NCBI RefSeq assembly: GCF_006345805.1
Contig: NC_043006.1
Location: 63,860,001 to 63,924,000, forward strand
Origin: Octopus sinensis
Lineage: Eukaryota
DNA length: 64,000 nt
Direction of reading: 5' to 3'
The notes beneath the pieces are model-generated. The model ran no database searches and was not told the origin of the DNA. It saw nothing but the letters and a program-made list of their open reading frames with translations. Both the position numbers and the translations under genes were made by a program. Below are positions 24,491-64,000 of this stretch, piece by piece (position 1 is the first letter of the stretch; every line of letters begins with the position of its first letter).

Positions 24491-24664
24491 CTGATTGGTT
24501 AAAATGTTTCTCAGTATGAGCCTTCACTTTGTGAACGCTATATGAATAAGCACGGTCGATGCTTCCTCGCGCTATACAAGCCGTGGCGTCTAAGCTGCAC
24601 ACTGATTGGTTAAAATTGCTTTTGTAAGCGTCAGTCGGCTGGAGCCTATCGGAAGGTATTTAAA
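24491..24664 (+). promoter_or_regulatory. H2A promoter
   Basis: Two copies of CTGATTGGTTAAAAT (inverted CCAAT) at ~24491 and ~24602, CTGGAGCCTA at 24639-24648 and TATA-like TATTTAAA at 24657-24664. Confidence 0.65.
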
Positions 24665-24725: not shown

Positions 24726-25103
24726 ATGTCAGGACGTGGTAAAGGAGGTAAAGTGAAGGGAAAGAGCAAGACCCGGTCGTCTCGTGCCGGACTTCAGTTT
24801 CCAGTCGGCAGGATCCATCGTCTACTCCGCAAGGGTAACTACGCCCAGCGTGTTGGTGCCGGTGCCCCAGTCTACCTGGCTGCCGTGATGGAGTACTTGG
24901 CCGCAGAAGTGTTGGAATTGGCAGGTAATGCTGCCAGGGACAACAAGAAGTCTCGAATCATCCCCCGTCACTTGCAGTTGGCTATCCGCAACGACGAGGA
25001 ATTAAATAAACTCCTGTCTGGAGTGACCATTGCCCAGGGAGGTGTCTTGCCCAACATCCAGGCCGTCCTTCTACCAAAGAAGACACAGAAGGCTGCCAAG
25101 TAA
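24726..25103 (+). CDS. H2A: Histone H2A, canonical, intronless
   Basis: 125 aa containing [47 protein letters not shown] and [21 protein letters not shown]. Confidence 0.99.
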
Positions 25104-25177
25104 AAAAAAAAAAGAAATGGAGAAAAAGAAACGAGTCGTGGCACCAATCTTGCTGTTAAAGCATCAATCAATCCAAC

Positions 25178-25193
25178 GGCCCTTCTAAGGGCC
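25178..25193 (+). terminator. Histone 3' stem-loop of H2A
   Basis: AAC-GGCCCT-TCTA-AGGGCC-ACCCA, matching the SLBP-binding consensus (UYUN loop). Confidence 0.95.
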
Positions 25194-26874
25194 ACCCATG
25201 TCTTCATGAAAGTTTTGTCATGGTCCCTATCGTCATTTTGCGATATACTTTTTTTCACTTATATTTCATGCCTTTTAAATTCACTTGACTCTCTTCAGTA
25301 TTTTCACTTAAAAGAACTTTTTTTCCCTCGAAGACTTAAGACCAATAACTTTTTCTAGGGTCAAGACCTCCCTCATCTTTCTTCAGAAGAGGATAATAGG
25401 GGAACAAATGTGATACTAACATTCTGAACTTTTTTGACTTTGATTCTGTATATTACAGAAAAGAGCTTATTCAGCTTGGAATCGTAAAAAGATGTTTTCC
25501 GAAAACAGATCAGTGCTAAATGTTTTTTTCGTCTTTTTTTTTTTTTTTGTGCTGTGTGACCCTCTTACAGATATAATAATTCCACCTCCATAGAACCAAT
25601 ATAAACACCATTCATTCTATACACAACAATCTCTCCTCTTTATTACTACACGTGATTTTTGTCTTAATTGTAAACAAATATTATAAATGTAAACATTCTC
25701 ACCTCCACTCTCTTCCCAGCATCGGACCAAGTATCTTCATTGATCACACAGGAACTTAACACGGAATATTTTATATAATGTACGTTTTACAAAAATATAT
25801 ATTTCATACATTCTTCTAGGTTCGATATTTGGCTCAATTCAAGCTCGAGTTTACAATCTAAGAAGACATCCCTATGGCTTTGTACCAATGTTCTGTCCAT
25901 TTTTATTAATAGACATGCATTTTTGCAATTGCCAATATTCTCTGCCCATTTAATTCTGTAAGAGTTTCAACGTAACGATTTTTTTAGTTTTTCGGCAAAT
26001 AAAGTTTTTGTTATGGTCATTATTATTCATATTGTCATTGCGAGTTCATATCGTGTCGATTGTTCACATGTAAACCATATATATATACAAACATATTGTC
26101 AGTAAATCATAAATCCGAAAGAGAAACAGATTCTAAGTTATAAAAGCAGTAGAGTAATTAAAGATAATTAACGACCGGTCTGTGGGGTTACCCTGGATTT
26201 CGCGGCCATAAAACGCTTAGCTTTACGGTTTTTCTTTAGACCCTAATGACCGATCTGAAGAAAGCTAAACGCTTTATGCGAACTCCATAGACCGACCACA
26301 ACTAATATATATATATATAACACAGTTCAAAATTTGAATTTAAACTAGTAAACGTATCACTTCAATATGTCCTTTAAAAACAAAAATAAGTTCATCTTTT
26401 TCTTCTATATTCTGTAATTTTTTTTGTTCTGTCTGTCTTATAATCAACTTTTTTTCTGATTTCGGCTGAGTTTTCCTTTTATTCATTCTCTTTATTGAAA
26501 TAACCGTTTCTGTCCACCTTCTATGATTAAAAAATAATACTGCGTCATAAGTGCGAACCGGTCCTCCTTCAGTGTGGTGGTACCAGCTGGTATTTTGCAT
26601 ACCTTGTATCCTTCAAGCTGTTTTCTCCCAGGACCAATACAGTATTTTCATACATCTATAGATTCTATCATTTGCTTGTTTCCGTCATGCTGGAGCACTG
26701 CTTCGAAAGAATTTAGTCAAACAAAATGATCGCAGTACTTACGAGATTTTTTTTTTCGAATCGGATACTTATTTTATCAGTCTCTTGCTAAGTTACGAGG
26801 GACAAACCAACATCGGTTGTCAAGCACTGGTAGTGGGGGGTTGCAAGAATCTATCTGGCACGCGTGTGTGTGTA

Positions 26875-29211: not shown

Positions 29212-30952
29212 AAGGGTAAAGGTGATGCTTTAGATAGGAATAACTACAAGGGTATTAAACTGCTGGATCAGGTGATGAAGGTCACAGAGAGGGTCATAGT
29301 CCATCTCATTAGGGAGAGAGTCTGCTTAGATGAGATGCAGTTTGGTTTTGTTCTGGGTAGAAGCACCACATGCCATATTCCTGGTTCGACAACTGCAGGA
29401 GAAATACCTAGCTAAAGATAAACCCCACTACTTAGCTTTTGTGGACTTGGAGAAAGCCTTTGACAGGGTCCCCCGATCCCTTATCTGGTGGGCAATGCGA
29501 AAACTGGAGATTGACAAATGGTTGATAAGGGCTGTACAGGCCCTATACAGAGAGGCTGTTAGTAAGGTTAGGATTGGCAACGAGTATAGTGAGGAATTCC
29601 GGGTAGAAGCAGGAGTGCACCAAGGTTCAACCCTTAGTCCCCTTCTATTCATCTTAGTCCTCCAGGCAATAACAGAGGAATTCAAGACGGGTTGCCCCTG
29701 GGAGCTCCTCTACGCTGATGACCTGGCCCTCATAGCAGAATAATTACCAGAACTAGAAAAGAAATTTCGGGTGTGGAAGCTAGGTTTAGAATCAAAGGGC
29801 CTTAGAGTAAATGTAGCAAAGACCAAAGTTATAGTAAGCAGGAAGGCGAACTCATCACACACCCTCTTGGGCAGGTGGCCCTGCTCAATCTGTAGAAAAG
29901 GTGTAGGTAGAAACTCCATAAGATGTACCCAGTGTAAGCTATGGACACATAAGAGATGCAGCAACATCAAAGGAAAATTAACCAAGAAGATAGCTTTCAT
30001 GTGCGGCAGATGCACAGGGGCAATAGACATCACAGATACTCAGAAAACAGATTCTATCACACTCCAGGGGGAGAAACTAGAAGTAGTTGATAGTTTCCGC
30101 TACCTAGGTGACCAAGTTAGTAGTGGAGGTGGATGTTCAGAGAGTGTTACCACTAGAATACGAATAGCCTGGTCAAAGTTTAGAAAGCTCCTACCCCTAC
30201 TGGTGACAAAGGGTCTCTCGCTCAGAGTGAAAGGTAGATTGTATGATGCATGTGTGCGAACAGCCATGCTTCACAGTAGTGAAACATGGGCTGTGACTGC
30301 AGAGGACATGCGTAGGCTTGAAAGAAATGAAGCTAGCATGATCCGATGGATGTGTAATGTCAGTGTGCGCGCACGACAGAGGGTAAGCACCCTGAGAGAA
30401 ATGCTGGACATAAGAAGCGTCAGATGTGGTGTGCAAGAGAGACGTTTGCGCTGGTATGGTCATGTACTGCGGATGGGTGAGGAGAGATGTGTGAAGAAGT
30501 GCCACTCTGGAGATATGCTGTGACTGCAAAGACCCAACAAATAATGTGAGTTCATGGCTGTTTCCTGCACCAGTTTCGCATAGCCCCAGCCCATCCAAAG
30601 TACCTTGGATTGCAGAATGACCTGCTGTGCTTGAGGAGACCTATTGAGTCAAGTACATCAACATCAAAATAAATATCAAATGGAAATTGTAGTTGTGATA
30701 CCTGTGCCAGTGGCACGTAAAAAGCACCATCTGAACGTGGCCGATGCCAGCCTCCCCTGGCTCCTGTGCTGCTGGCACATAAAAAGCACCTACTACACTC
30801 CCGGAGTGGTTGGCATTAGGAAGGGCATCCAGCTATAGAAACACTGCCAGATCAGACTGGAGCCTGGTGCAGCCTCCTGGCTTCCCAGACCCTGGTTGAA
30901 CCGTCCAATCCGGGCTAGCACGGAAAACGGATGTTAAAACGATGATGATGAT
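29212..30952 (+). mobile_element. 5'-truncated RTE-clade LINE pseudo-ORF (RT plus PHD-like finger) with 3' UTR
   Basis: YKGIKLL, QFGF, AFVDLEKAFDRV, GVHQGSTLSPLLF and YADD (29711-29722). Frameshift near 29370, premature TAA at 29741-29743, (GAT)n tail. Confidence 0.92.
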
Positions 30953-43095: not shown

Positions 43096-43416
<321 letters not shown>

Positions 43417-43494
43417 GCAATGTGGCTGGGATTTTAACCTAACATCTAATCATACCCACGATCTTCCGAACTACTTGAAAAAAAAAACATAAAC

Positions 43495-43510
43495 GGCCCT
43501 TTTAAGGGCC
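43495..43510 (+). terminator. Histone 3' stem-loop of H4 copy 1
   Basis: AAAC-GGCCCT-TTTA-AGGGCC-ACAAC. Confidence 0.97.
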
Positions 43511-44210
43511 ACAACATCATCCTGTTTGTCTCACATTACCAAACTCTTTGATATGACCTTAAAAAAAGAAAACTTAATTTTGCCATTATTAAATTTTAAA
43601 TTTCCTTCACACCAAAAAAAAAAAAGTGATGTAAATTTTTGTTGACATTATCACGTACGAAGTTAACTTTTTCATTAAACTATTTTTGCCAATATCTTTT
43701 GGAATCTATATAGTTTTTCCCTTACATGAAAATCGTTATGGAAATACAATAACGACCCCTCCCTTTAATTACACAAAAACTAAGATGTATACATAAATAC
43801 ATCAGACGTGTGTGTGTTAAATGTGTGTATAAAAAAATATATATAATTAACAGGTCCTTATTGATACATAACGCAAAAATGTTTCATCATTTGGGACTCT
43901 GGATTATACGAAGTTTCTTACAAATTCATCATTCATGTCTAACAACATTTTAACGTATCAAAGTAGAGGACTACCTATTGTACTAAAAACTATTTGCATA
44001 CTATATGAAGACATCGGGTACCCTCAACAAGAGGCGATATTTAATTACTAATTGTTACAAACCTTTTTAGAGAGTGTGTAAAACTTAAAAAATGGACAAT
44101 TTGCTTTCAATTGTTTAATAAATAATTATTTTCTGTTAAAGTGAATGTCATTTGTTTTTCTTCCTCTTCATATAGATATTTACAATTTCTAATCAATTGC
44201 AATTACTACC

Positions 44211-44642: not shown

Positions 44643-47600
44643 ACCGTTTGAAGAATTGGATTAGCTATGGTTGGAATACCTTTAATCGTGACTAACCTAG
44701 GGATAAAAAGTTGCCGGCCCCATAATGTCTGCACCGTGCAGAAGTCAGGGTGACTGCTCATCTTATGACCCCTTCAGAGATTCATGGTTGGAATTTAACC
44801 TGACCTGAGACCAGGTCTGAATATTTACAAAACAATAAAATCGGCCAAAGAACTTCAACGACGGTGCTAAAACAGGAGACCACGGATTAAGTCAATCCAT
44901 TTTTGAACTATGTAGGCTCGGAGGGGTCACCCAACTTACTAGAAATAACAGCCGGATCGTCCGCAATCCACATTATCTTAAGTGTAACGAAGACGGTTTA
45001 TATGACTAATGTAGATTCCTTTCAAAAATACGGAGGTTCATAGAATGGTGGGATTTTTGTTTTTTTTGTTGTTTTTTTCCGTATATGTTCTGACAGGTTT
45101 GACTTGGTGTTAAATACAATTTAACTGAAAACATCCTGAATTACGAAAATCACAATAAAGGGGTCTTGCAAATGCTTTCCTCTAAATGTTTACCATCAAC
45201 CCCTGCCTCTAGAACTAGGACTGATTAGGGCCGGTTACAAGGTTTTCAAGGACAATTTCCCCCAGACCGAGACGCCAGCTGAGTAGACCGAAGCAACGTG
45301 GAATTGAGTTTTTGTTCAAGAACACAACGCGCTGTCCGCTCTTGGAACCGAAACCACATTCCTGCAATCTAGAGTGCAACACTAACCACGAGGCCACACG
45401 TTTTCATGCTATAAAACATTTCGACATATACAAGTTATAGACTAGATTTATCTCCCTTGCAGTCTTTTATTTTCAAACAATATATGTTGATTATTTAAGA
45501 ATTAAACGTTCAGTTAAATATTTGTAGCAAAGTTCTTTTAATTTGATCTATCATTTTGCATTCAAATATAGATTATATATATTATATTATATATTTTCGG
45601 AATTCCAATCTACACGAACGTCATTAATAATGAATGAAATTCTTTAAATGTGTTGCACTTCCAGAGCTATTTATTGCCATTCAGATTCAACTATAAAGAA
45701 TTTTCCGTAGGAAATGTAACGTAAATTATACCATTAGCGCCACTTCTAAGGTTCATAGTGCCCTGGGCAAGCTGAATTTCAGCAACCTTATGCATTTTCC
45801 CCCAAGGTGTCTAGAAAACAATTCCAGCACAGCATCATTTCAAATTCTTTCCTTACGATATAACACCACCACAATATTCCACTTTCACAATCACAAACTT
45901 GACCTCTCACAGGGAATCCTTACATTATTTTCATATTTTTCTAATTCGTAGAACCTCATGGCGTGATGGTTCGATTTGATTATACCTTCAGCCAGTCCTG
46001 TAATAAATAACGTGTAAAGTTGTTTAACTCCATCATCACTTCGTATAATACAAGACACGTCATCAGGTGTTCAAATCAAAACTAGTCCTTTTTCTGGCAA
46101 GTTAAACAACCACAAAGGTTCATGAGCTGTCTTACAATGTACTATATAAATTATATGTATGTGTTTATTATTATTATTAATACAGGTATATTTTAAAGGT
46201 CCCTGGAGGTTATATATACATAGACAATGTGCAACATGAGTTCATTTTAAGTTTATTTCTTGGATTAAAAAGAAATTCCATAGCTAAAAATGTGGCACTG
46301 AACTGTCATCGCACTTCCATAAAGATTATGTATTTTGTACTCGGGCAAACTAGCATAGCTGGGCTGTTCGTTTCATATATCAGATTCGATCCCAAACTTC
46401 TTGGGCAAAGGTGGTTTACCGTAGCTTCTCGTCAACCCAAATTTAGATATGGAGAAACTTGTCGAATGGACTGTAAATGAAAAGATCCAGCCTTGTTTAC
46501 AATTTGTCACGCGGATTGTGCCTGGGATATTCAACCAACTACACTGAAAATACTCATCGTCGAAAACGACGAAGGCTCCATATGTCTTGAAGAGTTTGGA
46601 CACACAAATCAGTTCTAAATCTAAAATAGAGACTGGAGTCTTTCGCTTGGCAACAAGGTGGTTACAGATTCGACCCGTCACAACTGCGTGCGGGGGGGGG
46701 GGAGCTTAAGTTAGACTTCAGTAGGCGAAAACCCGTTGTGTGATTGTGTATTTATGTTTACTGCTCGACTAATTTCCTGGAAAGCGATATTCAAAAATAA
46801 AATAATAAAAGAATGGGTGTATTTAGTAATAGAATGTGGTTAAATCATTTTCCGAACCTAAGAGTCTGATGCACGAACCAACAAAAAAAAAAAAAAAAAG
46901 AGAGAGGCAGGAGAACACACGTCTAGAAGGAAAAAAATCCTGTCCAAAGCAGAAAAGTCCAATTTATGTAAGTTATTTCAGAAGCCCACGTTGGAATTAA
47001 AATTGAATAACTAAGACTTCCCTTCAAAGCAGAGCCCAAGAAAGTCTTATTAACTGAAACCTTAAGGTATTTGGGAGAAAATTGGGGAGGGACGGGCGGA
47101 AGTCTTTCCGAACTTTGCTACAAATATTTAACTGAACGTTTAATTCTTAAATAATCAACATTATTAAAAAAAAAAAAAAAAAAACCAAGGGGGATTTTTG
47201 CAAGGGAAATAAATCTAGCCTATTAAAAATCTGGCTTTCAAAAAGAAAAGATCCCTTGTTTATGTCGAAATGTTTATAGCTTGGGAACGTGTGGTCTCAT
47301 GGTTAGAGTGTTACACTCTCAATTGCAGGAACGTGGTTTCGGTTCCAAGAGCGGGCAGCGCGTTGTGTACTTGAACAAAAACTCAATTTCACGTTGCTTC
47401 GATCTATTTAGCTCGCGTCACGTTCTGGAGGAAATTGCCCTTGAAAACCTTGTAACCGACCCTAATCAGTCCTAGGACTTGATGGTAAACGTTTATATTA
47501 AGGAAAAAGCGAACTTTTATTTAGAGGAAAGCATTTGCAAAACCTCTTTATTGTGGTTTTCGTAATTCAGGATGTTTTCAGTTCAATTGTAGTTAACACC

Positions 47601-48077
47601 AAGTCAAACTTGTCAGAACATGTAAGGAAAATAAAACCTCACAATTCTATGACTGTCCATCTTTTTAAAAGGAATCTACGTTTGCCATATAAACCGTCTT
47701 CGTTACACTTGTTTAAGATGATGTGGATTGAGGATGATCCGGCTGTTATTTCTAGTAAGTTGGGTGACCCTTCCCAGCTTACATAGTTCAGAAATGGATG
47801 GTTGACTTAATCCGTGGTCTCCTGGCGGATTTCATTGTTTAGTAAATATTCAGACCTGGTCTCAGGTCAGGATAAATTCCAACCATTAATCTCGGAAGCC
47901 CTGAAGGGGTCATAAGACGAGCAGTCACCCTGACTAAAATTTTTTAAATGATTGTGGGTTGTTTGAAACCGTTGAACTCTGTACGGTGCAGACATTATGG
48001 GGGCCGGCAACTCTTCATCCCTAGCTAGTCATGATTAAAGGTATTCCAAACATGACTAATCCAATTTTTCAAAAGGT
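44643..48077. repeat. ~0.9 kb diverged inverted repeat (arms 44643-45535 and 47110-48077) with 1.57 kb spacer
   Basis: Both arms match the single segment 55595-56469 of duplication copy 2. Confidence 0.9.
47071..47109 (-). mobile_element. Isolated ~39 bp terminus of family E MITE
   Basis: Reverse complement GGAAAGACTTCCGCCCGTCCCTCCCCAATTTTCTCCCAA closely matches 44211-44250. Confidence 0.75.
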
Positions 48078-49642
48078 GTCTTGGACATTAGCGCTCCTTA
48101 AGCTTAACACCACAAGAGGGTCAAACCTGCATATAAATCATTGACAGTCTACCATGGTTATAATCTTGACTGCTATTTCTAGCATGTTGGGCGCCAGGAT
48201 ATAAACATGTCCTTTCTTTGTTATTGAAGACGGTAGAGTTCAATTTGAGGAATATTTGACTGATGTTTCTAACAGTGCAGAACGTACTTGTATAATTGTA
48301 ATGTGGATATAATGCCGCATTGCGCTGTAATGTTCCGATGTCGCCAACTTGTAATGAGAGAGCATTCTTAGAAAGTAGGAAACCATAACTTTGGTAGTTC
48401 CTTGCATTTACACATTTGTGGTACAAAAGTACTGGCAGAGCAAGAAATCTAGTCTGTATGAGTTTTATGAAACGATTAAGTCTACAAAAGAGATGTGATT
48501 TTCGACCACTTTCTGATAGAAGGCACTGAGGTTACATTGTCTTTTTCTCCCTAAGAAAGAAAATTTATTTTATAATAGTAATCTCTTTTTACACAATAAT
48601 TTTCTCAATTTATTTCTATATGGGAATGGCGTTTCGCTGTTGTATATGCGATGCAAGAGAGAGAGACTGGGTTGGCAGGGTCGTTAAAACAGCCGACGAA
48701 ATGCGCTGCGTTATTATTCCGGCTCCTTACTTTCCGCGTTCAGATCCAACAAAGATCAGCTTTGTCTTTCAGCTTTCAGGAATTCGATGTAATCAGTTTA
48801 AGCCCTCCTCTCATATTAGAAACCTCGAGCCAATATTAGAAACAACCGATTTTACTCCATAAGAGCCGAGATAATGACAATTGTGTTGTCAACTCAGTAA
48901 ATTTTACGACGCAAAAAATACCGATAACGAAAATAGCAATTTTTCTTTTGAGTGAGAAGCTTGTTGCTTCATCAATGACAATTTTTATTATAAAGATTGT
49001 TTGCCAGCAAACAATCTTTTGTTCTAGCCCCAGGAAACAGCCGTAACATTTATGCCAAACTGGATATTCCCTCATTATGTTGGCAAACAATCTTTCTGTT
49101 GTTTCCTGGGGCCAAAACAACGGTAACAGTCATCCTAACCGGACAATCATTACTGTTACATTACAGTACTGTTACTGTATGTTGAGAGATTTAGAAATAA
49201 TAAAGTTTCTATTCAACTTTTATTATATATTAGCATTAAGGGCATAGATTAGCAGAATCATTGGAAATTCTGATAAAATGCCTTGCGATACTTATTCCGG
49301 CACTTTACGTTCTTACTTCGAATCCTACCGAAGTCAGCTTTGCCTTTCATCCTATCGCGGTTGATAAAATAAGGACCAGTTGTGTACTTTCACTACTTTT
49401 ATCGATTAACCTCTTCCCCTCAAAATTCCTCGCATTTCGCCTAAGTTGACACACAGTTATTATATATTAGTATTGCTTTGTCCTGTGCTCCAGGAGGTTC
49501 TCGGGTTAAAATCCATTTAATTCAACCCCCATTTCGCCCTGCCAACATTGGTGAAATAAACTGTAGAGAGGCCTTGTCAAGAAATATAGCATTTATTTCA
49601 AAAAGGACACTCCTTAAATAGCATATTGTCAGTCAAATCGAC

Positions 49643-50214: not shown

Positions 50215-51129
50215 CGCTGACAGAACCGTTAGCATGCCAGACAAAATGTTTAATGCCATTTCATCCATCTTTATGTTTTGAGTTCAAATTCCGCTGATGT
50301 CAACTTTGCCTTTCATTCTTTCGAGGTTAATGAAATAAGTGCCAGTTATGCATTGAGGTCGATGTAATCGACTAGACCCCTCCCCTGCCTCAAAATTAGG
50401 ATGAGAGTGTAATAACAACATGGGATAGAAATGAGCAATATTCAAGTGTTACTTAACCTGTGATTACATTTTATAATTAGGTCGTCATATTTGTTAATAT
50501 TTTCCTTATCGTCCATTTCAGTGATGCAAAGTGAGTATGCTAGTATACTCGCCATATAGTTTTGCATATTGTACGATCAACCATTTAATAGTGTAATTCA
50601 CGGTCTTTTTGCAAACGCTGAACTATCTTCCTCAATGAAATGTTATTAGCCTCAGCCGCAGACCAAAAGATGGAATAATGATTACATAATCCACCTTAAA
50701 ATCTGTGCTTCATGTACCTACATAAACGCATCTAGACAAGTTAGTAGTAGCCATACACCTATAGACGATGTTTGTAATAAGACATTTATTATCTAAATGG
50801 CTGGGTACTTACATTTGCAACATTGCTTTGTGGATGCAGGTCGGGGGTGATTTCAGATATCATTCCCAGTGTCATGATAGGTTATGTCCCATGTGCCAAC
50901 AGGGCTTTCAGGGAAGGTGTTCCCTATTGTTGGTATCGTCAAGAACACCATCACTATCATATATATCATTGTCAGTTGGCTTTGTAAGAACCTTTGATCC
51001 ACTGTGCTCATGGCCGTGTTGTTTACACAGTTGGTGATGCATATATATACATACATATATATATATTTCGTTTTTGGATTTGGTTTGCAAGATTCTTTAT
51101 ATGAGTTCGTGTGTTGAAGCATATTCTGT

Positions 51130-51296
51130 TGTGTCTGGGGAGAGTCATTCTCTTTTAGTACCTTATTATTAATAGTCAAGACTATTGAAAAGGTTGCAAT
51201 ACGTAACGAAAATAAAAAGACGAAATAAGTGGAAATTTTACCGGTGAGTGTGTTAAATAATAAGGTACTAAAAGAGAATGACTCTCCCCAGACACA
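51130..51296. repeat. Perfect 41-bp inverted repeat with 85-bp spacer
   Basis: TGTGTCTGGGGAGAGTCATTCTCTTTTAGTACCTTATTATT at 51130-51170 and its exact reverse complement at 51256-51296. Confidence 0.95.
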
Positions 51297-51645
51297 TCAT
51301 CGTTTAACGTCCGCTTTCCATGCTAGCATGGGTTGGACGAATGACTGAGGGCTGGCGAACCAGATGGCTGCACTAGGCTTCAGTCTTTATCTGGCAGAGT
51401 TTCTACTGCTGGATGCCCTTCCTAACGCCAACCACTGCGAGAGTGTAGTGGGTGCTTTTACATGCCACCGGCACGGGGCCAGTCAGGCGGTACTGGCAAC
51501 GACCTCGCTCGAATCTTTTACACATGCCACCGGCACAGGTGCCAGTAAGGCGATGCTGGTAACGATCACGCTCGAATGGTGTCTTTTACGTGCCACCGGT
51601 ACGGAGGCCAGGTAGCCCCTCTTGCAACGATCACGCTCGGATGAT
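51297..51645 (-). mobile_element. RTE-LINE 3' UTR fragment
   Basis: Reverse complement of the shared tail, with internal sub-repeats. Confidence 0.75.
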
Positions 51646-53186: not shown

Positions 53187-53507
<321 letters not shown>

Positions 53508-53599
53508 GCAATGTGAGCCACAACTTTTCGGCTGGGTTCTTAACCTAACATTTAATTACACCCACGATCTTCCGAACCACTTGAAAAAAATACATAAAC

Positions 53600-53615
53600 G
53601 GCCCTTTTAAGGGCC
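53600..53615 (+). terminator. Histone 3' stem-loop of H4 copy 2
   Basis: AAAC-GGCCCT-TTTA-AGGGCC-ACAAC. Confidence 0.97.
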
Positions 53616-56600
53616 ACAACATCATCCTGTTTGTCTCACATTACCAAACTCTTTGATATGACCTTAAAAAAAGAAAACTTAATTTTGCCATTATTAAATT
53701 TTAAATTTCCTTCACAGAAAAAAAGTGATGTAAATTTTTGTTGACATTATCACGTATGAAGTTAACTTTTTCATTTAAACTATTTTTGCCAGAATCTATT
53801 TTTTCCCCTTACATGAAAATCGTTATGGAAGTACAATAACGAACCCTCCCTTACTTTTTAAATTCTAATTACACAAAAGCTAAGAAAGCTTTATACATAA
53901 ATACATCAGACGTGTGTGTGTGTGTTAAAACTGTGTATATAAATATAATTAACAGGTCCTCATAAGACGGTACATTACACAAAAATGTTTATTCATTTTG
54001 GGAATCTGGATTATACGAAGTTTTTCATAACGAAGAAGTATTTCTTTCAAATCGACTTGAATTCGTTATGAAAAATTTCTTTATCAAATTCGTCATTATG
54101 TCTAACATTTCAACGTAACAAAGTAGAGGACTACCTGTTGTATTAAAAACAATTTGCATACTATATAAAGACATCGGGTGCTCTCAACAAGAGGCGATAT
54201 TTAATTACAAATTGTCACAAACCTTTTTAGAAAATGTGTAAAACTTATAATAATGGACAATTTGTTTTCTATTGTTAAATAAATAATTATTTTCTGTTAA
54301 AGTGAATGGCATTGTTTATTTTTCTTCCTCATAGATATTTACAATTTCTAATCAATTACAGTTAATACCTTAAGGTTTCAATTAATAGAACTTTCTTGGG
54401 CACTGCTTTGAAAGGCAGTTTTAGTTCCATCGTATTTTAATTCCAACGCGGGCTTCTGAAATAACTTACATAAATTGGACTTTTCTACTTTGGTCAGGAT
54501 TTTTTTCCTTCTAGACGTGTGTTCTCCCGTTTCTCTTTTTTTTTGGTTTGTGCATCAGTCTCTTAGGTTCGGAAAATGATTTAACCACATTCTATTACAA
54601 AATACACCCATTCTTTTTATTATTTATTCTTGAATATCGCTTTCCAGGAAATTAGTCGAGTGGTAAACATAAATACACAATCACACAACGGGTTTTCGTG
54701 TACTGAAGTCTAGCTTAAGCCCCCCCCCCCCCCCCCGCACGCAGTTGTGACGGGTCGAACCTGTTTACCACCTTGTTGCCAAGCGAAAGACTCCAGTCTC
54801 TATTTTAGATTTAGAACTGAATTGTTTGTCCAAACTCTTCAAGATATATGAAGCCTTCGTCGTTTTCGACGATGAGTATTTTCAGTGTAGTTGGTTGAAT
54901 ATCTTATTCACGTAATTATAGGGCACAATCCACGTGACACATTGTAAACAAGGCTGGATCTTTTCATTTACAGTCCATTTGACAAGTTTCTCCATATCTA
55001 AATTTGGGTCGACGAGAAGCTACGGTAAACCACCTTTGCCTTAACTTGCCAGAAAAGGACAGTAGTTTTGATTGGAAAGTGATGGAGTTAAACAGCTTTA
55101 CACGTTATTTTTACAGGACTGGCTGAAGGTATAATCAAATCGAACCATCACGCCATGAGGTTCTACGAATTAGAAAAACGTGAAAATAATGTAAAGATTC
55201 CTTGAGTGAGGTCAAATTAGTGATTGTGAGAGTGGAATATTGTGGTGGAGTTATATTGTAAGGAAAGAATTTGAAGTGATACTGTGCTGGAATTGTTTTC
55301 TAGACACCTTGGGGGAAATGCATAAGGTTGCTGAAATTCAGCTTGCCCAAGGCACTATGAACCTTAGAATTGGCGCTAATGGTATAATTTACGTTACATT
55401 TCCTACGGAAAATACTTTATAGTTGAATCTGAATGGCAATAAATAGCTCTGGAAGTGCAACACATTTAAAGAATTTCATTCAGTTTTGAAGGTGTTCGTG
55501 TAGATTGGAATTCCGAAAATATATATTACACGGTAATATATAATATAATATATATAATCTATATTTGAATGCAAAATGATAGATCAAATTAAAAGAACTT
55601 TGCTACAAATATTTAACTGAACGTTTAATTCTTAAATAATCAACATATATTGTTTGAAAATAAAAGACTGCAAGGGAGATAAATCTAGTCTATAACTTGT
55701 TTATGTCGACATATTTTATAGCATGAGAACGTATGGTCTCATGGTTAGAGTGTTGCACTCTCGATTGCAGGAATGTGGTTTCGGTTCCAAGAGCGGGCAG
55801 CGCGTTGTGTTCTTGAACAAAAACTCAATTCCACGTTGCTTCGGTCCACTCAGCTGGCGACTCGTTCTGGAGGAAATTGCCCTTGAAAACCTTGTAACCG
55901 GCCCTAATCAGTCCTAGTTCTAGAGGCAGGGGTTGATGGTAAACATTTAGAGGAAAGCATTTGCAAGACTTCTTTATTGTGATTTTCGTAATCCAGGATG
56001 TTTTCAGTTCAATTATATTTAACACCAAGTCAAACTTGTCAGAACATATACGGAAAAAAACAAAAACCCACTATGACAGTCCATCTTTTTGCCACATAAA
56101 CCGTCTTCGTTACACTTACGATAATGTGGATTGCGGGTGATCCGGCTGTTATTTCTAGTAAGTTGGGTGACCCTTCCGAAATGGATTGTTGACTTAGTCC
56201 GTGGTCTCCTGTTTTAGCACCGTCGTGGAAGTTCTTTGGCGGGTTTCATTGGTCTCAGGTCAGGTTAAATTCCAACCATTAATCTCTGAAAGCCTGAAGG
56301 GGTCATAAGATGAGCAGTCACCATGACTTAATTTTTTTTAATGACTGAGGGTTGTTTGAAACCGTTGAACTCTGCACGGTGCAGACATTATGGGGCCGGC
56401 AACTCTTCATCCCTAGTTAGTCATGATTAAAGGTATTTCAAACATGACTAATCCAATTTTTCAAAAGGTGTCTTGGACATTAGCGCTCCTTAAGCTTAAC
56501 ACCACAAGAGGGTCAAACCTGCATATAAATCATTGACAGTCTATCATGTTTATAATCTTGACTGCTATTTCTAGCATGTTGGGCGCCAGGATATAAACAT

Positions 56601-59600
56601 GTCCTTTCCTTGTTATTGAAGACGGTAGAGTTCAATTTGAGGGATATTTGACTGATGTTTCTAACAGTGCAGAACGTACTTGTATAATTGTAATGTTCCG
56701 ATGTCGCCAATTTGTTATGAGAGAGCATTCTTAGAAAGTAGGAAACCATAATTTTGGTAATTCCTCGCGTTTACACATTTGTGGTACAAAAGTATTGGCA
56801 GAGCAAGAAATCTAGTCTGTATGAGTTTTATGAAACGATTAAGTCTACAAAAGAGGTGTGATTTTCGACCACTTTCTGATAGAAGGCACTAAGATTACAC
56901 TGTCTTTTTCTCCCTAAGAAAGAAAATTTGTTTTATAATAGCAATCTCTTTTAACAAAATAATTTTCTTAATTTATTTCTATATGGGAATAAACAGGAAA
57001 AATACTGTTTTTGATGCAGTATTTTCTTTTTCTCTTGCCTTTCGTTGTTGTATATGCGATGCAAGAGAGAGTGGGTTGGCAGGGTCGTTAAAACAGACAA
57101 CGAAATGCACTGCGTTATTATTCCGGTTCCTTACTTTCTGCGTTCAGATCCAACAAAGAACAGCTTCGTCTTTCAGCTTTCCGAAATTCGATGTAATCAG
57201 CTAAAGTCCTCCTCTCAAATCAGAAACCTTGAGCGAATGTTAGAAATTACCGCTTTTACTCAATAAGAGCCGAGATAATGACATTTGTATTGTCAACTCA
57301 GTAAATTTTACGACGCAAAAAAATACCGATAACGAAAATAGCAATTTTTCTTTTATTTGAGTGAGAAGCTTGCTGCTTCATCAATGACAATTTCTATTAT
57401 AAATATTGTTTGCTGGCAAACAATCTTATTGTTGTTTTAGATCCAGGAAACAGCCGTAACATTTATCCCACATTACGTTGGCAAACAATCTTTCTGTTGT
57501 TTCCTGGGGCTAAAACAACGGTAACAGTCATCCTAACCGGACAATCTTTACTTTAAAGTACTGTTACTGTAAGTCGAGAGATTTAGAAATAATAGAGTTT
57601 CTATTTAACTTCTATTATATATTAGCATTAAGGGCATAGATTAGCAGAATCATTGGAAATTCTGATAAAATGCCTTGCGATACTTATTCCGGCACTTTAC
57701 GTTCTTACTTCGAATCCTACCGAAGTCAGCTTTGCTTTTCATCCTATTGTGGTTGATAAAATAAGGACCAGTTGAGCACTTTCACTACTTTTATTGATTA
57801 ACCTCTTCCCCTCAAAATTGCTCGCATTTCGCCTCAGTTGACACACAGTTATTATATATTAGTATTGCTTTGTCCTGTGCTCCTGGAGGTTCTCGGGTTA
57901 AAATCCATTTGATTCAACCCCCATTTCGCCCAGCCAACATTGGTGAAATAAACTGTAAAGAGACCTTGTCAAGAAATATTTCATTTATTTCAAAAAGGAC
58001 ACTCCTTAAAAAGTGTGTATATATTGTCAATCAAATCGACATTCGTATATAAATGGTAATTATTATATTTCCTCTGGAGGGGCTGACAGCGGTAGAATTA
58101 AAACGGAACATTAAGTTTATTCAGTACAAGGGATACTTAATCAGGCCGCTTCAACTATCTAACAATCTTTCTTAATAGGAACAGATTAGAATAAACAACT
58201 CGTAGTTATAGAGCATCAAGTCCCTCACTGTCGAAGAAGCACGAATATCGTCAATATGGCAATCTCATTTCTTTATATTATTCTGGGCATTAGTGTAGTA
58301 CGTGCGATTGATTAATCCATCAGTTTTGATAATCAATGCTCCATCAATAAAATTACCTGCTCATCGTTAATGGCTGAGTGTTCCAGACACTTGAAACCCG
58401 TAATGTATCAGACTGTCAACAGCAGGTGTTTACACACACCAAATGCATAATGAGCAGTTGTGCTGTTAAATGAGATTTACTGTCAGTGGTTATGAGTCAT
58501 TATCCTGATTAGACAGTAATGTTTATAACGATAACGAAAGGAGAGAGAGAGAGAGGTGTGGCATGAGAAGGAATGGGTTAGTTTGTATTTTAACTGTGGT
58601 TATTTTTTTAAAAATCAAGGTCTTGGCAAATACATGCATGTATAGTATACGCACTCTTATCTTATTTACAGGTAAGCGGGACATCAAATAATTATATCTA
58701 ATTCATAGGTCATTAAATGAAATATTGCAAGCTTAAATTACTCGGCTATCCGATAAAATTATAATTTTTTGCAAGCTTTATTAAAGTAATTTTACTTTTA
58801 ATTATCACAGTTAAAATACAAAAGTGCCCGAGAATTCATACCAAGAAAATAAAATTGAAGGGAATGGTAAAAAAAAACAATTTTTTTCCAACAAGAATGA
58901 ATTTAGTGAAATGCTTTCTATAGAAAACTTATGAATATCTAATCGCATCTCGCTGCTCATCGCTATTCCCAGATTGCTTCTTTAGTTTGATGTCCAGATC
59001 TGTCTGCACTGATCGAGTGAACCGGATGATAAAAAAAGCGCACCAAACACAACTATACTCTCTTTTTCCTTTTTATCTTTAGCCTAATTTAAACTATCCT
59101 GTATCCTTTGGTTAAGATAGTAAAGTGAACCCAGCCAACTGTTATTGAGAATTAGTTATTTCCGAATATTTATCAGAAAAAAACCCAAAAAAACACAGGA
59201 TCGACATTAGCTGTTTAGTTTTCTACATCAGGGGACTACATTGTATAACGTGTTTTTCCTTCTTATAGACTTATGGTACAATTTGGTTGTTATTTCTGTT
59301 TCGCAGATCATGTAGAGACTCATATTTCTCTTCTGGTACGATCAATTCAATACACACACTGCCAAGTATCAGAATCGTATTATGATAGAATTGCTTTTAA
59401 TTTAGGCACAAGGCCAGCAATTTTAGGGAGAGGTTTTAGTCGATTAAACCGATCCAGTACATGACTGGGATTTGATTTTATCGATCTCAGCAGGATTTGA
59501 ACTCTGGTTAAAGGGCCGGAAAAAATACTGCGAAGTATTTTGTCAAACGTTGCCCTCATATTGTGATACATAATGAATTAATTAGATTTGGGCGGGGGAG

Positions 59601-60754
59601 GAGGTCTACCGACTCGCCTTTGACTTTATTTCCCACGACCACGTCCTTTAAATGACCAAAATCATACTTTCAACAAGCAAAAATAATTTTGTCCGTTTTA
59701 AAATCCTTTCAACCATGTTTTGCGCATTTCATTAAATTTATTCATGATAGCATCACCTAAAAACAAGCCACGGAAATGTTTTTAAATTTTGATAAACTGT
59801 CAAAATAAAATTTATTTTCGAATAATGAAATTTTTTTTGCTCTATTTTGTATTGTTTTGTTTCAAAAGTGAAGATTTTGTTTTTTTCCTCTTAAAAAAAA
59901 AAAAAAGATGATCTGAAACGATTGTAATTAAATATATTAATATATACAATTAATGATATGCACATATTAAAAATGAAGAATTGAACTTTTTGTAAGTGAC
60001 AAAATAAAATCCACTACCAAACATTATTAATCAATAAATGATTTATGGGAGGTGGTAGAAGTAAAATGATGATGACGAAAGGTGGGGCAGAATAGAAAAC
60101 AGAGTTCCAAGGGTACCTTGGAATAGATATAGTTCCAATTTGTTGTTTTGTTTTTTGAAGAGAATAGGATGGAGATACTTGTTACTGGAATAATTATGTA
60201 AACGGTAGTAAATAGTAGCAGATGTATTGAAAGAACCGAATGAAGCTGAAGGTAACCACACTCAACGGGTAATAAATAGCTTCAATATACGTCGTTCAGT
60301 TTTGCACAGATCGGGGTGGGAATGAAGGTGAAAATACAAAGCACCAGAATATCTTGGAATATATGTATCTCTTGGAGAGAGATAAATGGATGGGGTTGGT
60401 ATAGAGTTGGCAGTCACTCATTATTTTCTCCTTATGAACATTTGCTGGCTGTGGTTTCCAAACACAACTACTGATGTTTGTGTTTATATTTGACACATAT
60501 ATACATCATATCTTCAGGTGACAAACATGAAATGTAATAACGGGAGCGATCTAGTTATTACAGTATGTTTGCTTGTAAAATATGTTTAAAAAAGAAAATA
60601 CGATCAGCTCTTTAAAAAAAAACTATGTTTAAATGGATTTAGATTAAATTTATAAGATATTTTAAGCATTCAGAATTGTATTGAAATGTTTATATGCTTG
60701 GATGTGTTGTTAGAATAACAAATGTCAATAGATGTAGGTGTATTGATTTTAGTA

Positions 60755-60760
60755 TTTATT
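60755..60760 (-). terminator. Candidate polyadenylation signal of H2B
   Basis: AATAAA on the minus strand about 250 nt after the H2B stop. No histone stem-loop was found in between. Confidence 0.5.
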
Positions 60761-61009
60761 TTGGAGTTTATATTATATAGAACATTTTAAATCAACTTGT
60801 TGATGTAAACATGAATGTGTTTATGTATGCGAATGTTTATAAATATAAACATTAAATTCTGATGTTAATGTGATGCAATGCATTTTATAAGTTTCCATCG
60901 TGTATCGTCGATTCGTTGAAGTTGAGGAAAATGAAAGTACATCAACATATATGTATGTATGTATGTAAGTCCCCATAAAACGAGGGAGGGAGAATTAAAT
61001 GGTCTTCTC

Positions 61010-61378
61010 TCATTTGCTGCTGGTGTATTTAGTGACGGCTTTGGTTCCTTCTGATACGGCGTGTTTGGCTAATTCACCCGGTAACAAAAGACGAACTGCT
61101 GTCTGCACCTCACGACTGCTAATGGTCGATCGTTTATTGTAGTGGGCAAGGCGGCTGGACTCTGCGGCGATTCTTTCGAACAGGTCGTTGACGAAGCTGT
61201 TCATAATGGACATAGCCTTGCTAGAGATACCCGTGTCCGGGTGCACCTGCTTCAATACTTTATAGATATAGATAGAATAGCTTTCCTTCCTCTTCCTCTT
61301 CCTCTTTTTGTCACCACTGCGGGCCGGTTTCGGTTTCGCAGCTTTCTTAGCTCCTTTGGCACTCACTTTGGGTGGCAT
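61010..61378 (-). CDS. H2B: Histone H2B, variant-like, intronless
   Basis: 122 aa containing [34 protein letters not shown] and [26 protein letters not shown]. Confidence 0.99.
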
Positions 61379-61516
61379 GGTTCAAAATAGAACAGTGGTG
61401 GTGATCGTGGCAGTTGGTTGGCAATGAAACAGTGGTGGTAGCAAGAAAAAAAGGAAGGAATTTCGAAGAGTAAGAAAAAATGTTAAAGCAACGGTTGGAA
61501 CAATGCGTTTCATTTT

Positions 61517-61687
61517 TATTTATATGAAAAGAGTAGGCTCCAGAGATCGTAGTTAAGCGAGTCTAGCCAGCCGATTTCGCTTTAAAGCAATTCAATTGGC
61601 TACAATTAGAAACTGTCATACAACTCAGCCAATCAAAAGATAGCTGTACCTTTTCGTTCCTTGTGTGCTATCGTGGTCTGTGATTGG
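61517..61687 (-). promoter_or_regulatory. H2B promoter
   Basis: TATAAATA at 61517-61524, CTGGAGCCTA at 61534-61543, CCAAT/ATTGG boxes at 61595, 61629 and 61683. Confidence 0.7.
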
Positions 61688-63740
61688 ATAGAATTGCTTC
61701 TCACATGCTGTCTGCTTAGCTGTACGTGAGTGATAATGTGTATGTTTGGCTCTCATTTCCATTCTCTCTTTTAACGTTTCTGTCTGGAAGCATTATGGTT
61801 AAAAAAAAATTTTTAAGGACGAACCACACTAGTTTTATCAATCAAACTGAGCGATTTAATTAATTCCGTCAAGATTCTGCTAGAGCTAATCTGGTATTAC
61901 GATAAACTGAAACAAAATCTAATAAATCATGATTATTTACAATCCTCAGGGTAACGTCCGCGACGAGGCGTGGTTGTGTGGTAAGAAGTTTACTTCCCAT
62001 CCACATGGTTCTGGGTTCAGTCCCACTGCTTGGCACCTTGGGCAAGTGTCTTCTATTATAGCTAAAGCCGTGTAAGCCGATTTGATAGACGGAAACTGAA
62101 AGAAGGCCGTCGTTTGTGTGTGTGTCTTTACTGCTTGACAACTGGTGTTGTTTTGTTTACGTCCTCGTAACGTAGCGATTCGGCAAAATAGACTGATAGA
62201 ATAAGTACCAGGCTTTTAAATAAAAACAAGTAGAGGGGTCGATTCGTTTCTACACTAGGCACAAGGCCCGAAATTTTGGGGGAGGGGGGCAAGTCGATTA
62301 GATCGGCCCCCAGCATGGCTGCAGTCCAATGATTAAAGCCAAGTAAAAAATATAAGATGCTATATATAATGAGGAATTGAATTTGTGATTTCTTTCCCCC
62401 TCAGAATCGTAACATCTGATGTTTAAAACAATGATCTGAATAAATTTTCAGCAAGAAACGGAATAGAACGTTGAAGGTACATGTTCTGATAGAACGTTTC
62501 TCTTCCCAATGTTGTTAAACACTTAACTGGACAGACACAAAAAAAGTTCTGGCTTATTTTTAGTTCGGAAAAATAAGAAGTGGTGACGTTCATAACATTC
62601 ATTTGTGCATAAATGAATTGAATCGATTGGAAATCTAACCTGTCTTGCGAATGCAATTAACCTGGAGATTTAACAACTAACCAAAAAAGAATTGGAATTG
62701 GGCTGGTTACGAACGGAAGGGAACGAGAAAGCCAGCAGACAAGATTTCCAAAGGAAGAACTGTATCAAGCTAGATGAAAGACACGTACGCATAATGATAA
62801 AGAATTTTTCACTCTGAAAACAATTTCGACTTCGGAGTCGCCATATTTCTCTTAGGTGAGGAAATGAGAGTACTCTTAGCCTTTCCAGTTCCCACTGTTA
62901 CTTCCCGGCACCGTTTACGTCCTTTTCTCTGCATAGATAATACCCTATCTTTTAATCACGTGGTAAGGCAGTGTCCAGAACCCTTTTAAGGATTTTCAAG
63001 GATTGTGGGAGGAAAAGAGGAAGATAGCTTCAAACAGGAAACAGTTGAGTAAACTCCGTTAAAGGAACCCGAACTGTTAGGTACGGTAGCGATGTTAAAC
63101 CAACCGTAGCAGTATGGAGGTATGAACTGTAACAGCGCGTCACTGCATCCACCATTTATTGGGGATTCCTGACTACTCTTGTCTCTTGGCATGACACCTT
63201 TGCACCACTCGGGTGACAGCCTTCCAACCCATGGATCTGTTTGGGCAAATCCTACCTGAATCTCTTTTAGTCGCCTTTTACAAGTTATATTCTTTGACGT
63301 GCAGGGTTCCTACACAGAGCAATATGAAACGAAGTGTTTGCTCAAGAACACAACACACCGCCCGATCTTGGAATCGAAACCACGCTCTGACGATCTTGTG
63401 TGCAACATCCTGAGCACTAGGCCTCGCGCCTTAAACCAAGCCAAAGATTAAATCTACTACTGATGTAAGACAATCGTGAGATTTTATCCCCAAACTTTAA
63501 GAACCGGAATAAATACTGCAACGCATTCATCTTGAGGTTCCTACAGTTCTGCCCACCACTACACTCGATTGACAGTTTGTTTTTTTTTGGTGTGTGGGGG
63601 TTCTCGAAAGGATGAAAAGCATAGACGACCTTGGCAGAATTTGAACACAGAGCGCAGAGTGTCAAAACAGATTCCACAAGGCACTCTGTACCCAACAGTA
63701 ATGACTTCGCCAATTCACTATTGAATCAGAATAAATCCTT

Positions 63741-63968
63741 GATCAGAGACTTTCCATCTGTGATCCTCCTGTCTTAAACCAGTTGTTGTTCTTTAGCCCT
63801 CACCAGATCAAACCCTCGATCAGAGACTTTCCATCTGTGACCCTCCTGTCTTAAACCAGTTGTTGTTCTTTAGCCCTCACCCAGATCAAACCCTCGATCA
63901 GAGACTTTCCATCTGTGACCCTCCTGTCTTAAACCAGTTGTTGTTCTTTAGTCCTCACCCAGATCAAA
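63741..63968. repeat. 77-78 bp tandem repeat, three near-identical units
   Basis: Units start at 63741, 63818 and 63896 (GATCAGAGACTTTCCATCTGTGA...). The unit resembles a SINE 3' tail. Confidence 0.9.
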
Positions 63969-64000
63969 GGCCCTCCATCTGTGACGATCCTGACTGTGAT

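Follow-up and report, generated by a model that had tools for sequence, protein, structure and literature searches.

Does a solitary octopus H2B gene without a histone stem-loop supply histone independently of DNA replication, and does it encode an unusual H2B? The question is raised by the gene at positions 61010-61378 on the (-) strand of a 64-kb stretch of the Octopus sinensis genome, the window (64,000 nucleotides, nt), in which position x is position 63,860,000 + x of the CM016868.1 record (GCA_006345805.1). A preliminary description of the window had noted a missing stem-loop, an AATAAA downstream of the gene, an intact promoter and four unusual stretches in the histone fold, and had proposed a polyadenylated, replication-independent or tissue-specific H2B variant. 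Our analysis suggests that this is probably a functional, solitary, replacement-type octopod H2B gene whose mRNA is cleaved and polyadenylated, analogous to Drosophila His4r.

The H2B gene and its setting

The intronless coding sequence (CDS; 61010-61378, (-) strand) is an open reading frame (ORF) of 122 amino acids (aa) and a stop codon. Its product matches the Pfam Histone family (PF00125, E=8.6e-23) and 173 H2B chains of the PDB at E<1e-30, the best full-length match being 6pwe_D, the 'Histone H2B' chain of a nucleosome (E=5e-62). It has both the histone fold and the H2B-specific sequence of a core histone H2B, and is 86-92% identical to H2B proteins of molluscs, bryozoans and echinoderms. 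An exact-protein look-up found the protein encoded on CM016868.1, at a locus (L001) 100% identical to window positions 56010-64000, and the gene is already present in public databases (NCBI, UniRef). Its relatives there are named 'H2B, gonadal', a name inherited by similarity and not from expression evidence.

Searching the window by tblastn with H2A, H2B, H3 and H4, we recovered one H2A, two H4 and one H2B gene and zero fragments. The H2B gene stands alone: it has no divergent H2A partner, its closest histone gene is an H4 gene 7.5 kb away, and the main tandem histone cluster lies on a different chromosome, CM016867.1. Codon composition does not separate it from the cluster H2B genes, the GC content at third codon positions being 0.57 and 0.58, respectively.

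Absence of the histone stem-loop

A canonical histone gene has a conserved 16-nt stem-loop within about 100 nt past its stop codon, which the window H2B gene lacks. The Rfam Histone3 model gave zero matches even at E≤10 in positions 58000-62000, which take in the first 3 kb past the stop codon. The same model detected the stem-loop of the H2A gene at the gathering score (25173-25218) and those of both H4 genes at 28 bits. The stem-loop pattern GGYYYTNNNNARRRCC has three matches in the 64-kb window, with 0.29 expected by chance. All three are on the (+) strand, behind the H2A gene (25178) and the two H4 genes (43495 and 53600), and the pattern scan found no stem-loop downstream of H2B on the (-) strand anywhere in the window. 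We rejected a distant or degenerate stem-loop, as the Rfam search over 4 kb at E≤10 and the whole-window scan were both empty on the H2B strand. Together with the same absence in an orthologue from another octopod (L002, see below), these searches bear out the preliminary observation, and the gene really has lost the histone stem-loop.

The stem-loop pathway exists and serves H2B in octopus, because the H2B genes of the main cluster carry GGTCCTTTTCAGGACC 21-30 nt past the stop codon. The stretch that follows these stem-loops, TCTCATGATTGTT, is absent from 140 nt of the window-H2B 3′ flank, although no dedicated search for a U7 element was made and the octopus element is not experimentally defined. 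The 3′ flank (60775-61009, (-) strand), devoid of a histone stem-loop, contains an (ACAT)n microsatellite and a weak hairpin at about 60987-60970. This small hairpin (TCCCT-N8-RGGGA, with a 5-bp stem and an 8-nt loop), 22-40 nt past the stop codon, is predicted in both species. It was rejected as a functional stem-loop, since it is not of the SLBP type and its stability is not above that of shuffled sequence (z=-1.1 and -0.4).

The protein compared with cluster H2B

The residues DLF, AAESS, TISS and REVQ, from which the preliminary description derived a variant, are all present in the window H2B. Other lophotrochozoan and deuterostome H2B proteins read DIF/DVF, AAEAS, TITS and REIQ instead, as seen in Watersipora, Babylonia, a hemichordate, crinoids and the H2B chains of the two best PDB matches. 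However, they are not marks of a variant, as all four also occur in the H2B of the octopus stem-loop genes. We traced the exact protein of the window H2A to the tandem histone cluster of O. vulgaris (OX597823.1, 35.06-35.12 Mb), where H2B genes of 125 aa and H2A genes form divergent pairs separated by 266 bp, beside H3 and H4 genes. Every cluster H2B examined in O. vulgaris has GGTCCTTTTCAGGACC(ACCCA) 21-30 nt past its stop codon. The 125-aa cluster protein XP_029640569.1 is also found in O. sinensis on CM016867.1 (L024), where its gene is again paired divergently with H2A and bears its stem-loop 29 nt past the stop codon, and several further 125-aa O. sinensis proteins named 'H2B, gonadal-like' belong to the same cluster. 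The four residue stretches are carried by the stem-loop 125-aa H2B of O. sinensis (L024) and of O. vulgaris (L012-L015, L023). In an ENA assembly that encodes an H2A identical to that of octopus, the full-length stem-loop H2B has DLF, TISS/TLSS and REVQ, but EAS; ESS was seen there only in two truncated H2B copies of 81 aa. The preliminary description had itself named the occurrence of these residues in stem-loop H2B genes, combined with use of a stem-loop further downstream, as evidence against its reading; the first of these two is what we found. DLF, ESS, TISS and REVQ are cephalopod lineage features and not variant signatures.

Over the fold and the C-terminal region, only 2 of the 93 residues differ from cluster H2B (L42 vs M and A72 vs S), and at both positions the window H2B holds the residue common in canonical H2B of other animals. 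The other real differences are confined to the N-terminal tail. Compared with the cluster tail, MPPAPATASKGAKKASKAKASRPTGDKKRKKKRK, the window tail has A7, A14, P16 and P18; overall, the two tails differ in a few residues and by 3 aa in length. The KPKP of this tail was seen in no other aligned sequence, and tail-specific peptide stretches are AAKPKPAR for the window protein vs ASKAKASRPTGDK for cluster H2B. We found no SPKK repeats and no extensions in the window H2B. With two fold changes in 93 residues and no repeats, the protein does not group with the structurally distinct H2B variants (TH2B/H2B.1, H2B.W, subH2B, sperm H2B). Judged from its sequence, it is an essentially normal octopus H2B with a slightly different tail and not a structurally special variant. 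Specialisation at the protein level, if any, would sit in the N-terminal tail.

Conservation and age of the gene

The orthologue L002 is a Logan contig (run SRR11869391) of another octopod, which takes in the H2B gene together with its promoter and 1.05 kb of 3′ flank. It is collinear with the window, with 83% identity over 2.1 kb, and it has no stem-loop either. Its H2B protein, 122 aa, is identical: all 12 differences in the CDS are synonymous and none is non-synonymous. Over the fold, non-synonymous divergence (dN) is 0 and synonymous divergence (dS) 0.205, and the CDS is 96.7% identical vs about 81% in the flanks. An identical protein together with the absence of a stem-loop in L002 therefore excludes an assembly artefact and strongly disfavours a decaying pseudogene. 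From these comparisons, the loss of the stem-loop is seen to be old and maintained, and the gene to be under strong purifying selection.

Synonymous divergence is saturated both between the window H2B and cluster H2B and between the window H2B and a second type of stem-loop-less gene, P0150 (see below). With dS against the cluster genes saturated, the window gene is not a recent escapee from the cluster but an old paralogue of the stem-loop H2B genes of its own genome. A maximum-likelihood tree of coding sequences placed six stem-loop-less genes on one side and the stem-loop genes, including the gastropod outgroup, on the other, with a weak support of 79/89. Moreover, the decamer GAGAAGACCA, located right after the stop codon, is common to the window H2B and the paralogue P0150 and is not found in cluster genes. 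The tree, weak as it is, and the shared decamer make a single ancient loss of the stem-loop before the Octopus-Argonauta split plausible, not proven. A search for cephalopod orthologues with the N-terminal tail returned nothing closer than 88% among the cluster representatives.

Stray H2B copies were observed in other genomes. In Babylonia areolata, an H2B copy on an unplaced scaffold (L020, 2370-2400) has no stem-loop owing to a clean deletion of about 60 nt relative to L021 and L022, two chromosomal copies in which the deleted stem-loop segment stands at +43. Stray stem-loop-less copies can therefore arise by simple deletion. In O. vulgaris, an orphon H2B beside an H2A gene (L011, 8716-9093; OX597823.1, ~99.36 Mb) shows unusual C-terminal changes, LVKNAVSEGTNAVIKYTSSK, and has kept its stem-loop; it may be a degenerating copy.

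A second stem-loop-less paralogue

P0150 (XP_014770953.1 in O. bimaculoides, XP_029641645.1 in O. sinensis) is a solitary, intronless H2B gene of 122 aa, located 7.7 Mb away on the same chromosome. The type is conserved in Argonauta hians (P0052, GAB1600986.1), and no stem-loop was found at P0150/P0052 in O. sinensis, O. bimaculoides or Argonauta. These proteins, annotated as 'histone H2B, gonadal', share the DLF/ESS/TISS/REVQ fold residues with the window H2B, and their genes likewise have GAGAAGACCA after the stop codon. They differ from it in the N-terminal tail, MPSEISS...TKAKSS, in a promoter with an E-box and a CRE (cAMP response element), and in a clearly conserved ATTAAA/AATAAA signal.

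In O. sinensis, the ATTAAA of P0150 at +369 is the only canonical hexamer within 600 nt, and it aligns with the AATAAA at +296 in Argonauta. We used local alignment to compare the paralogue poly(A) signals, as MAFFT misaligned the Argonauta 3′ untranslated region (UTR). The conserved block round the signal, TATTTTCTG-A-TAAAGC...TTTGTCCCT-TCAC, scored 46 vs a maximum of 40 in 500 shuffles. Among octopod H2B genes that lack a stem-loop, conserved poly(A) signals therefore do exist.

Upstream of the paralogue (L003, 2790-2830; O. sinensis CM016868.1, ~71.666 Mb) we observed an E-box/CRE composite, CACGTGGTGACGTCA, followed by CCAAT and TATA, and the CRE and CCAAT are retained in Argonauta (L018, 2830-2860). 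This arrangement hints that the paralogue is regulated quite differently from the cluster histone genes. In Argonauta, a 5S rRNA gene (68 bits; L018, 1792-1909, (-) strand) was detected 1.1 kb upstream of this H2B gene.

Promoter

The promoter of the window H2B gene is intact, as first described, and every one of its elements is conserved in L002. Three CCAAT boxes lie between 61595 and 61687 on the (-) strand (61687-61683, inverted 61633-61629 and 61599-61595). In the core promoter (61519-61543, (-) strand), CTGGAGCCTA (61543-61534) is followed after 9 nt by the TATA box TATAAATA (~61526-61519). The H2A promoter of the window has an exact match to CTGGAGCCTA at 24639-24648, and the corresponding layout in cluster H2B genes is CTGAGCCTA-N9-TATAAATA. 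H2A promoters have CTGGAGCCT(A/C) and then TATTTAAA, with a spacing of 8 nt in the window H2A and 9 nt in cluster H2A. The sequence CTG(G)AGCCTA, about 9 nt upstream of TATA, thus recurs in octopus H2A and H2B promoters of both cluster and dispersed copies (24639-24648, 61534-61543 and the intergenic regions of L015 and L024), and was not found in the H4 promoters. We propose this sequence as a candidate core-promoter element of cephalopod histone genes.

The distance from TATA to ATG is 146 nt in the window H2B vs 45 nt in cluster H2B, and a much longer 5′ UTR is therefore implied for the window gene. Placing the transcription start by the position of the TATA box predicts a 5′ UTR of about 115 nt (61379-61495, (-) strand). 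Just 5′ of the H2B promoter, both octopods have a SINE-like element (short interspersed nuclear element) that is apparently tRNA-derived (GGTTCTGGGTTCAGTCCCACTGC; window 61950-62040, L002 1-70), and fragments resembling it are dispersed across the window.

Formation of the 3′ end

Two ways of forming an mRNA 3′ end are known in metazoans, SLBP/U7 processing and cleavage with polyadenylation. We arrive at polyadenylation of the window H2B mRNA mainly by elimination between these two routes. Without a stem-loop the pre-mRNA would not be processable by SLBP/U7 and would be left to cleavage and polyadenylation. A group of candidate poly(A) signals is found at 60744-60774 on the (-) strand: AATATA/TATAAA at +236/+238, AATAAA at +250, ACTAAA at +257 and AATACA at +266. 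The AATAAA (60760-60755) is the one noted in the preliminary description, 250 nt past the stop codon. Weak variants conserved in position between the window and L002 are AATATA/AATAGA at +236, AATACA at +266 and TATAAA at +169 and +316. A U/GU-rich stretch, TTGACATTTGTTAT (60715-60727, (-) strand), identical in L002, could serve as the downstream element of a poly(A) site. Cleavage would most likely occur about 240-290 nt past the stop codon, in a region where O. sinensis has the AATAAA and L002 weaker variants, with the conserved GU-rich stretch after them. Exact-protein look-ups for transcripts returned genomic contigs only, the Logan contigs including promoter and SINE sequence.

A polyadenylated H2B mRNA would escape the stability control coupled to S phase and could thus provide H2B when DNA is not being replicated, for instance in embryos, oocytes or long-lived cells that no longer divide. 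Lacking a stem-loop and standing at a solitary locus outside the main cluster, the gene looks like a replacement histone gene. Of the preliminary description, the loss of the stem-loop and the intact histone-type promoter stand, and with the gene under strong purifying selection a polyadenylated, replication-independent mode appears most plausible; a structural or tissue-specific variant defined by fold substitutions is not supported.

Several points weigh against this interpretation. The comparative evidence for a poly(A) site is weaker here than at P0150. The AATAAA at +250 falls in a 12-nt indel missing from L002 and is found in O. sinensis only, and L002 has zero AATAAA or ATTAAA in its 1.05 kb of 3′ flank. 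The weak hexamer variants are expected by chance in DNA so AT-rich. Conservation of the 3′ flank is about 61-89% per 100 nt, not above that of the upstream flank, and defines no UTR boundary. With a histone-type promoter retained, transcription could still fall largely in S phase. Finally, polyadenylation, the position of the 3′ end and the timing of expression are all inferred.

Alternative explanations

The promoter leads to an alternative in which the gene is polyadenylated yet replication-coupled, that is, transcribed in S phase from a histone-type promoter and adding to the replicative H2B pool instead of serving as a replacement histone. Cluster H2B and H2A genes have core promoters of the kind seen here, CTG(G)AGCCTA-N9-TATAAATA with CCAAT. 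In addition, H4 and H2A genes with stem-loops lie within 8-36 kb, and the fold is nearly identical to cluster H2B. Nevertheless, the separate maintenance of a single stem-loop-less copy over tens of millions of years, with many cluster copies available, points to a role of its own, and the 5′ UTR, as judged from the TATA position, is far longer than in cluster genes. We consider replication coupling unlikely. The setting of the gene outside the main tandem cluster, amid repeats and transposon fragments, would also suit a decaying orphon, a dispersed copy of cluster H2B that lost its stem-loop, is poorly expressed or silent and is becoming a pseudogene. Loss of the stem-loop by small deletion does happen in stray copies, as in Babylonia, and a conserved canonical poly(A) signal was not found. 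However, two octopods have exactly the same protein although dS is about 0.2 and the flanks diverge by about 17-19%, all promoter elements are conserved, and saturated dS against the cluster genes means long survival, which makes decay very improbable.

Even less credit can be given to a tissue-specific structural variant, for example of testis or brain, with fold substitutions altering nucleosome properties. The absent stem-loop agrees with it, as does the name 'H2B, gonadal' of the relatives, although that name was given by similarity. In contrast, all four substitutions occur in the stem-loop cluster H2B of the same genome, the two residues out of 93 in which the fold does differ are the commoner ones in metazoans, and SPKK repeats and extensions are lacking; we regard this explanation as highly doubtful. 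The chance that the stem-loop is missing only through an artefact of assembly or annotation, in a collapsed or misassembled region, is negligible. The region is repeat-rich, was assembled from long reads and has the (ACAT)n microsatellite where the stem-loop would be expected, but the artefact is refuted by L002, an independent Logan assembly that is collinear for 1.05 kb past the stop codon and has no stem-loop.

We therefore retain the replacement-type gene as the preferred explanation. A broader proposal, which we advance tentatively as possible rather than probable, is that octopods possess an ancient dedicated lineage of intronless stem-loop-less H2B genes (at least two conserved paralogues, the window gene and the P0150 type, predating the Octopus-Argonauta split) as a replication-independent supply, an H2B counterpart of H3.3 or His4r. 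Oocytes might draw on it, or long-lived post-mitotic cells such as those of the very large neuronal population.

Other features of the window

The H2A gene with its canonical stem-loop occupies 24726-25218 on the (+) strand (CDS match 24726-25100, stem-loop 25173-25218). Both H4 genes, also on the (+) strand, have stem-loops as well: the first spans 43105-43531 (CDS match 43105-43413, stem-loop 43490-43531) and the second 53196-53636 (CDS match 53196-53504, stem-loop 53595-53636). The two H4 genes (43105-43416 and 53196-53507) have identical proteins and identical stem-loops and apparently lie in a segment duplicated in tandem, about 10 kb apart. In the flanks of the duplication (~44.6-49.6 kb and 56-58 kb), positions 56010-58010 match 47584-49618 at 83-91%.

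Between the H2A and H4 genes lies a retrotransposon fragment (29330-30523, (+) strand) containing ORFs with RVT_1 and PHD-finger matches. Three tandem copies of a 78-bp unit, with 96% identity, occupy 63733-63968, which is 2.4 kb upstream of the H2B gene. At 51119-51306, a long near-perfect inverted repeat gave a sub-threshold MIR841 match; it looks like a hairpin of the MITE type (miniature inverted-repeat transposable element) and not a microRNA gene.

Comparison with known systems and significance

The closest analogue, Drosophila His4r, has introns. It is a solitary polyadenylated gene outside the tandem cluster, with a 3′ end without stem-loop and a canonical protein (PMC8943024). The octopus H2B gene resembles it in being solitary, stem-loop-less and coding for a nearly canonical histone. 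It differs in that the H4 protein of His4r is 100% identical to the canonical one, whereas the octopus H2B has a distinct N-terminal tail; moreover, polyadenylation of His4r has been demonstrated, while that of the octopus H2B is only inferred.

Among vertebrate genes, the mammalian germline H2B variants (H2B.1, H2B.W, H2B.L/subH2B, H2B.K and H2B.N) have clearly diverged folds and are germline-restricted. By comparison, the fold of the octopus protein is canonical for its own lineage. In most of the mammalian H2B.L, H2B.N and H2B.K genes, the 3′ UTR contains a poly(A) signal (PMC8857922). Near-canonical H2B is also made from polyadenylated mRNAs of HIST1H2BK/H2BC12 and HIST2H2BE/H2BC21, genes of the mammalian cluster, in differentiated or non-dividing cells (PMC5100578, PMC3661734). 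In those genes the stem-loop has been kept, and a poly(A) site further downstream is used as an alternative to it, whereas the octopus gene is without any stem-loop.

Invertebrates offer further parallels. The cleavage-stage histone genes of sea urchins lie outside the main repeat and have polyadenylation signals, and their proteins are strongly diverged. Mytilus H1 orphons carry a stem-loop too. They encode H1, not H2B, in which they are unlike the octopus gene. These 'orphon' genes are mentioned as invertebrate histone genes outside the main repeat with polyadenylation signals (PMC6210712). All five H2B variants of Hydractinia have stem-loops (PMC5011920). We found no description of stem-loop-less H2B genes of cephalopods in the searchable literature. 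Among the core histones, H2B has to our knowledge the smallest number of recognised replacement variants, with almost nothing described for molluscs, and we know of no universal replacement H2B in animals.

The comparison with the cluster genes corrects a tempting error, namely to take cephalopod lineage residues for the signature of an H2B variant. There would also be consequences for expression studies. RNA sequencing of octopus by poly(A) selection or oligo-dT priming, including single-cell data, would show the window gene and P0150 as 'H2B' and miss the cluster genes, and such 'H2B' reads could be mistaken for a proliferation signal. If the proposed reading is true, octopods have met the need for H2B outside S phase through loss of the stem-loop in dedicated gene copies.

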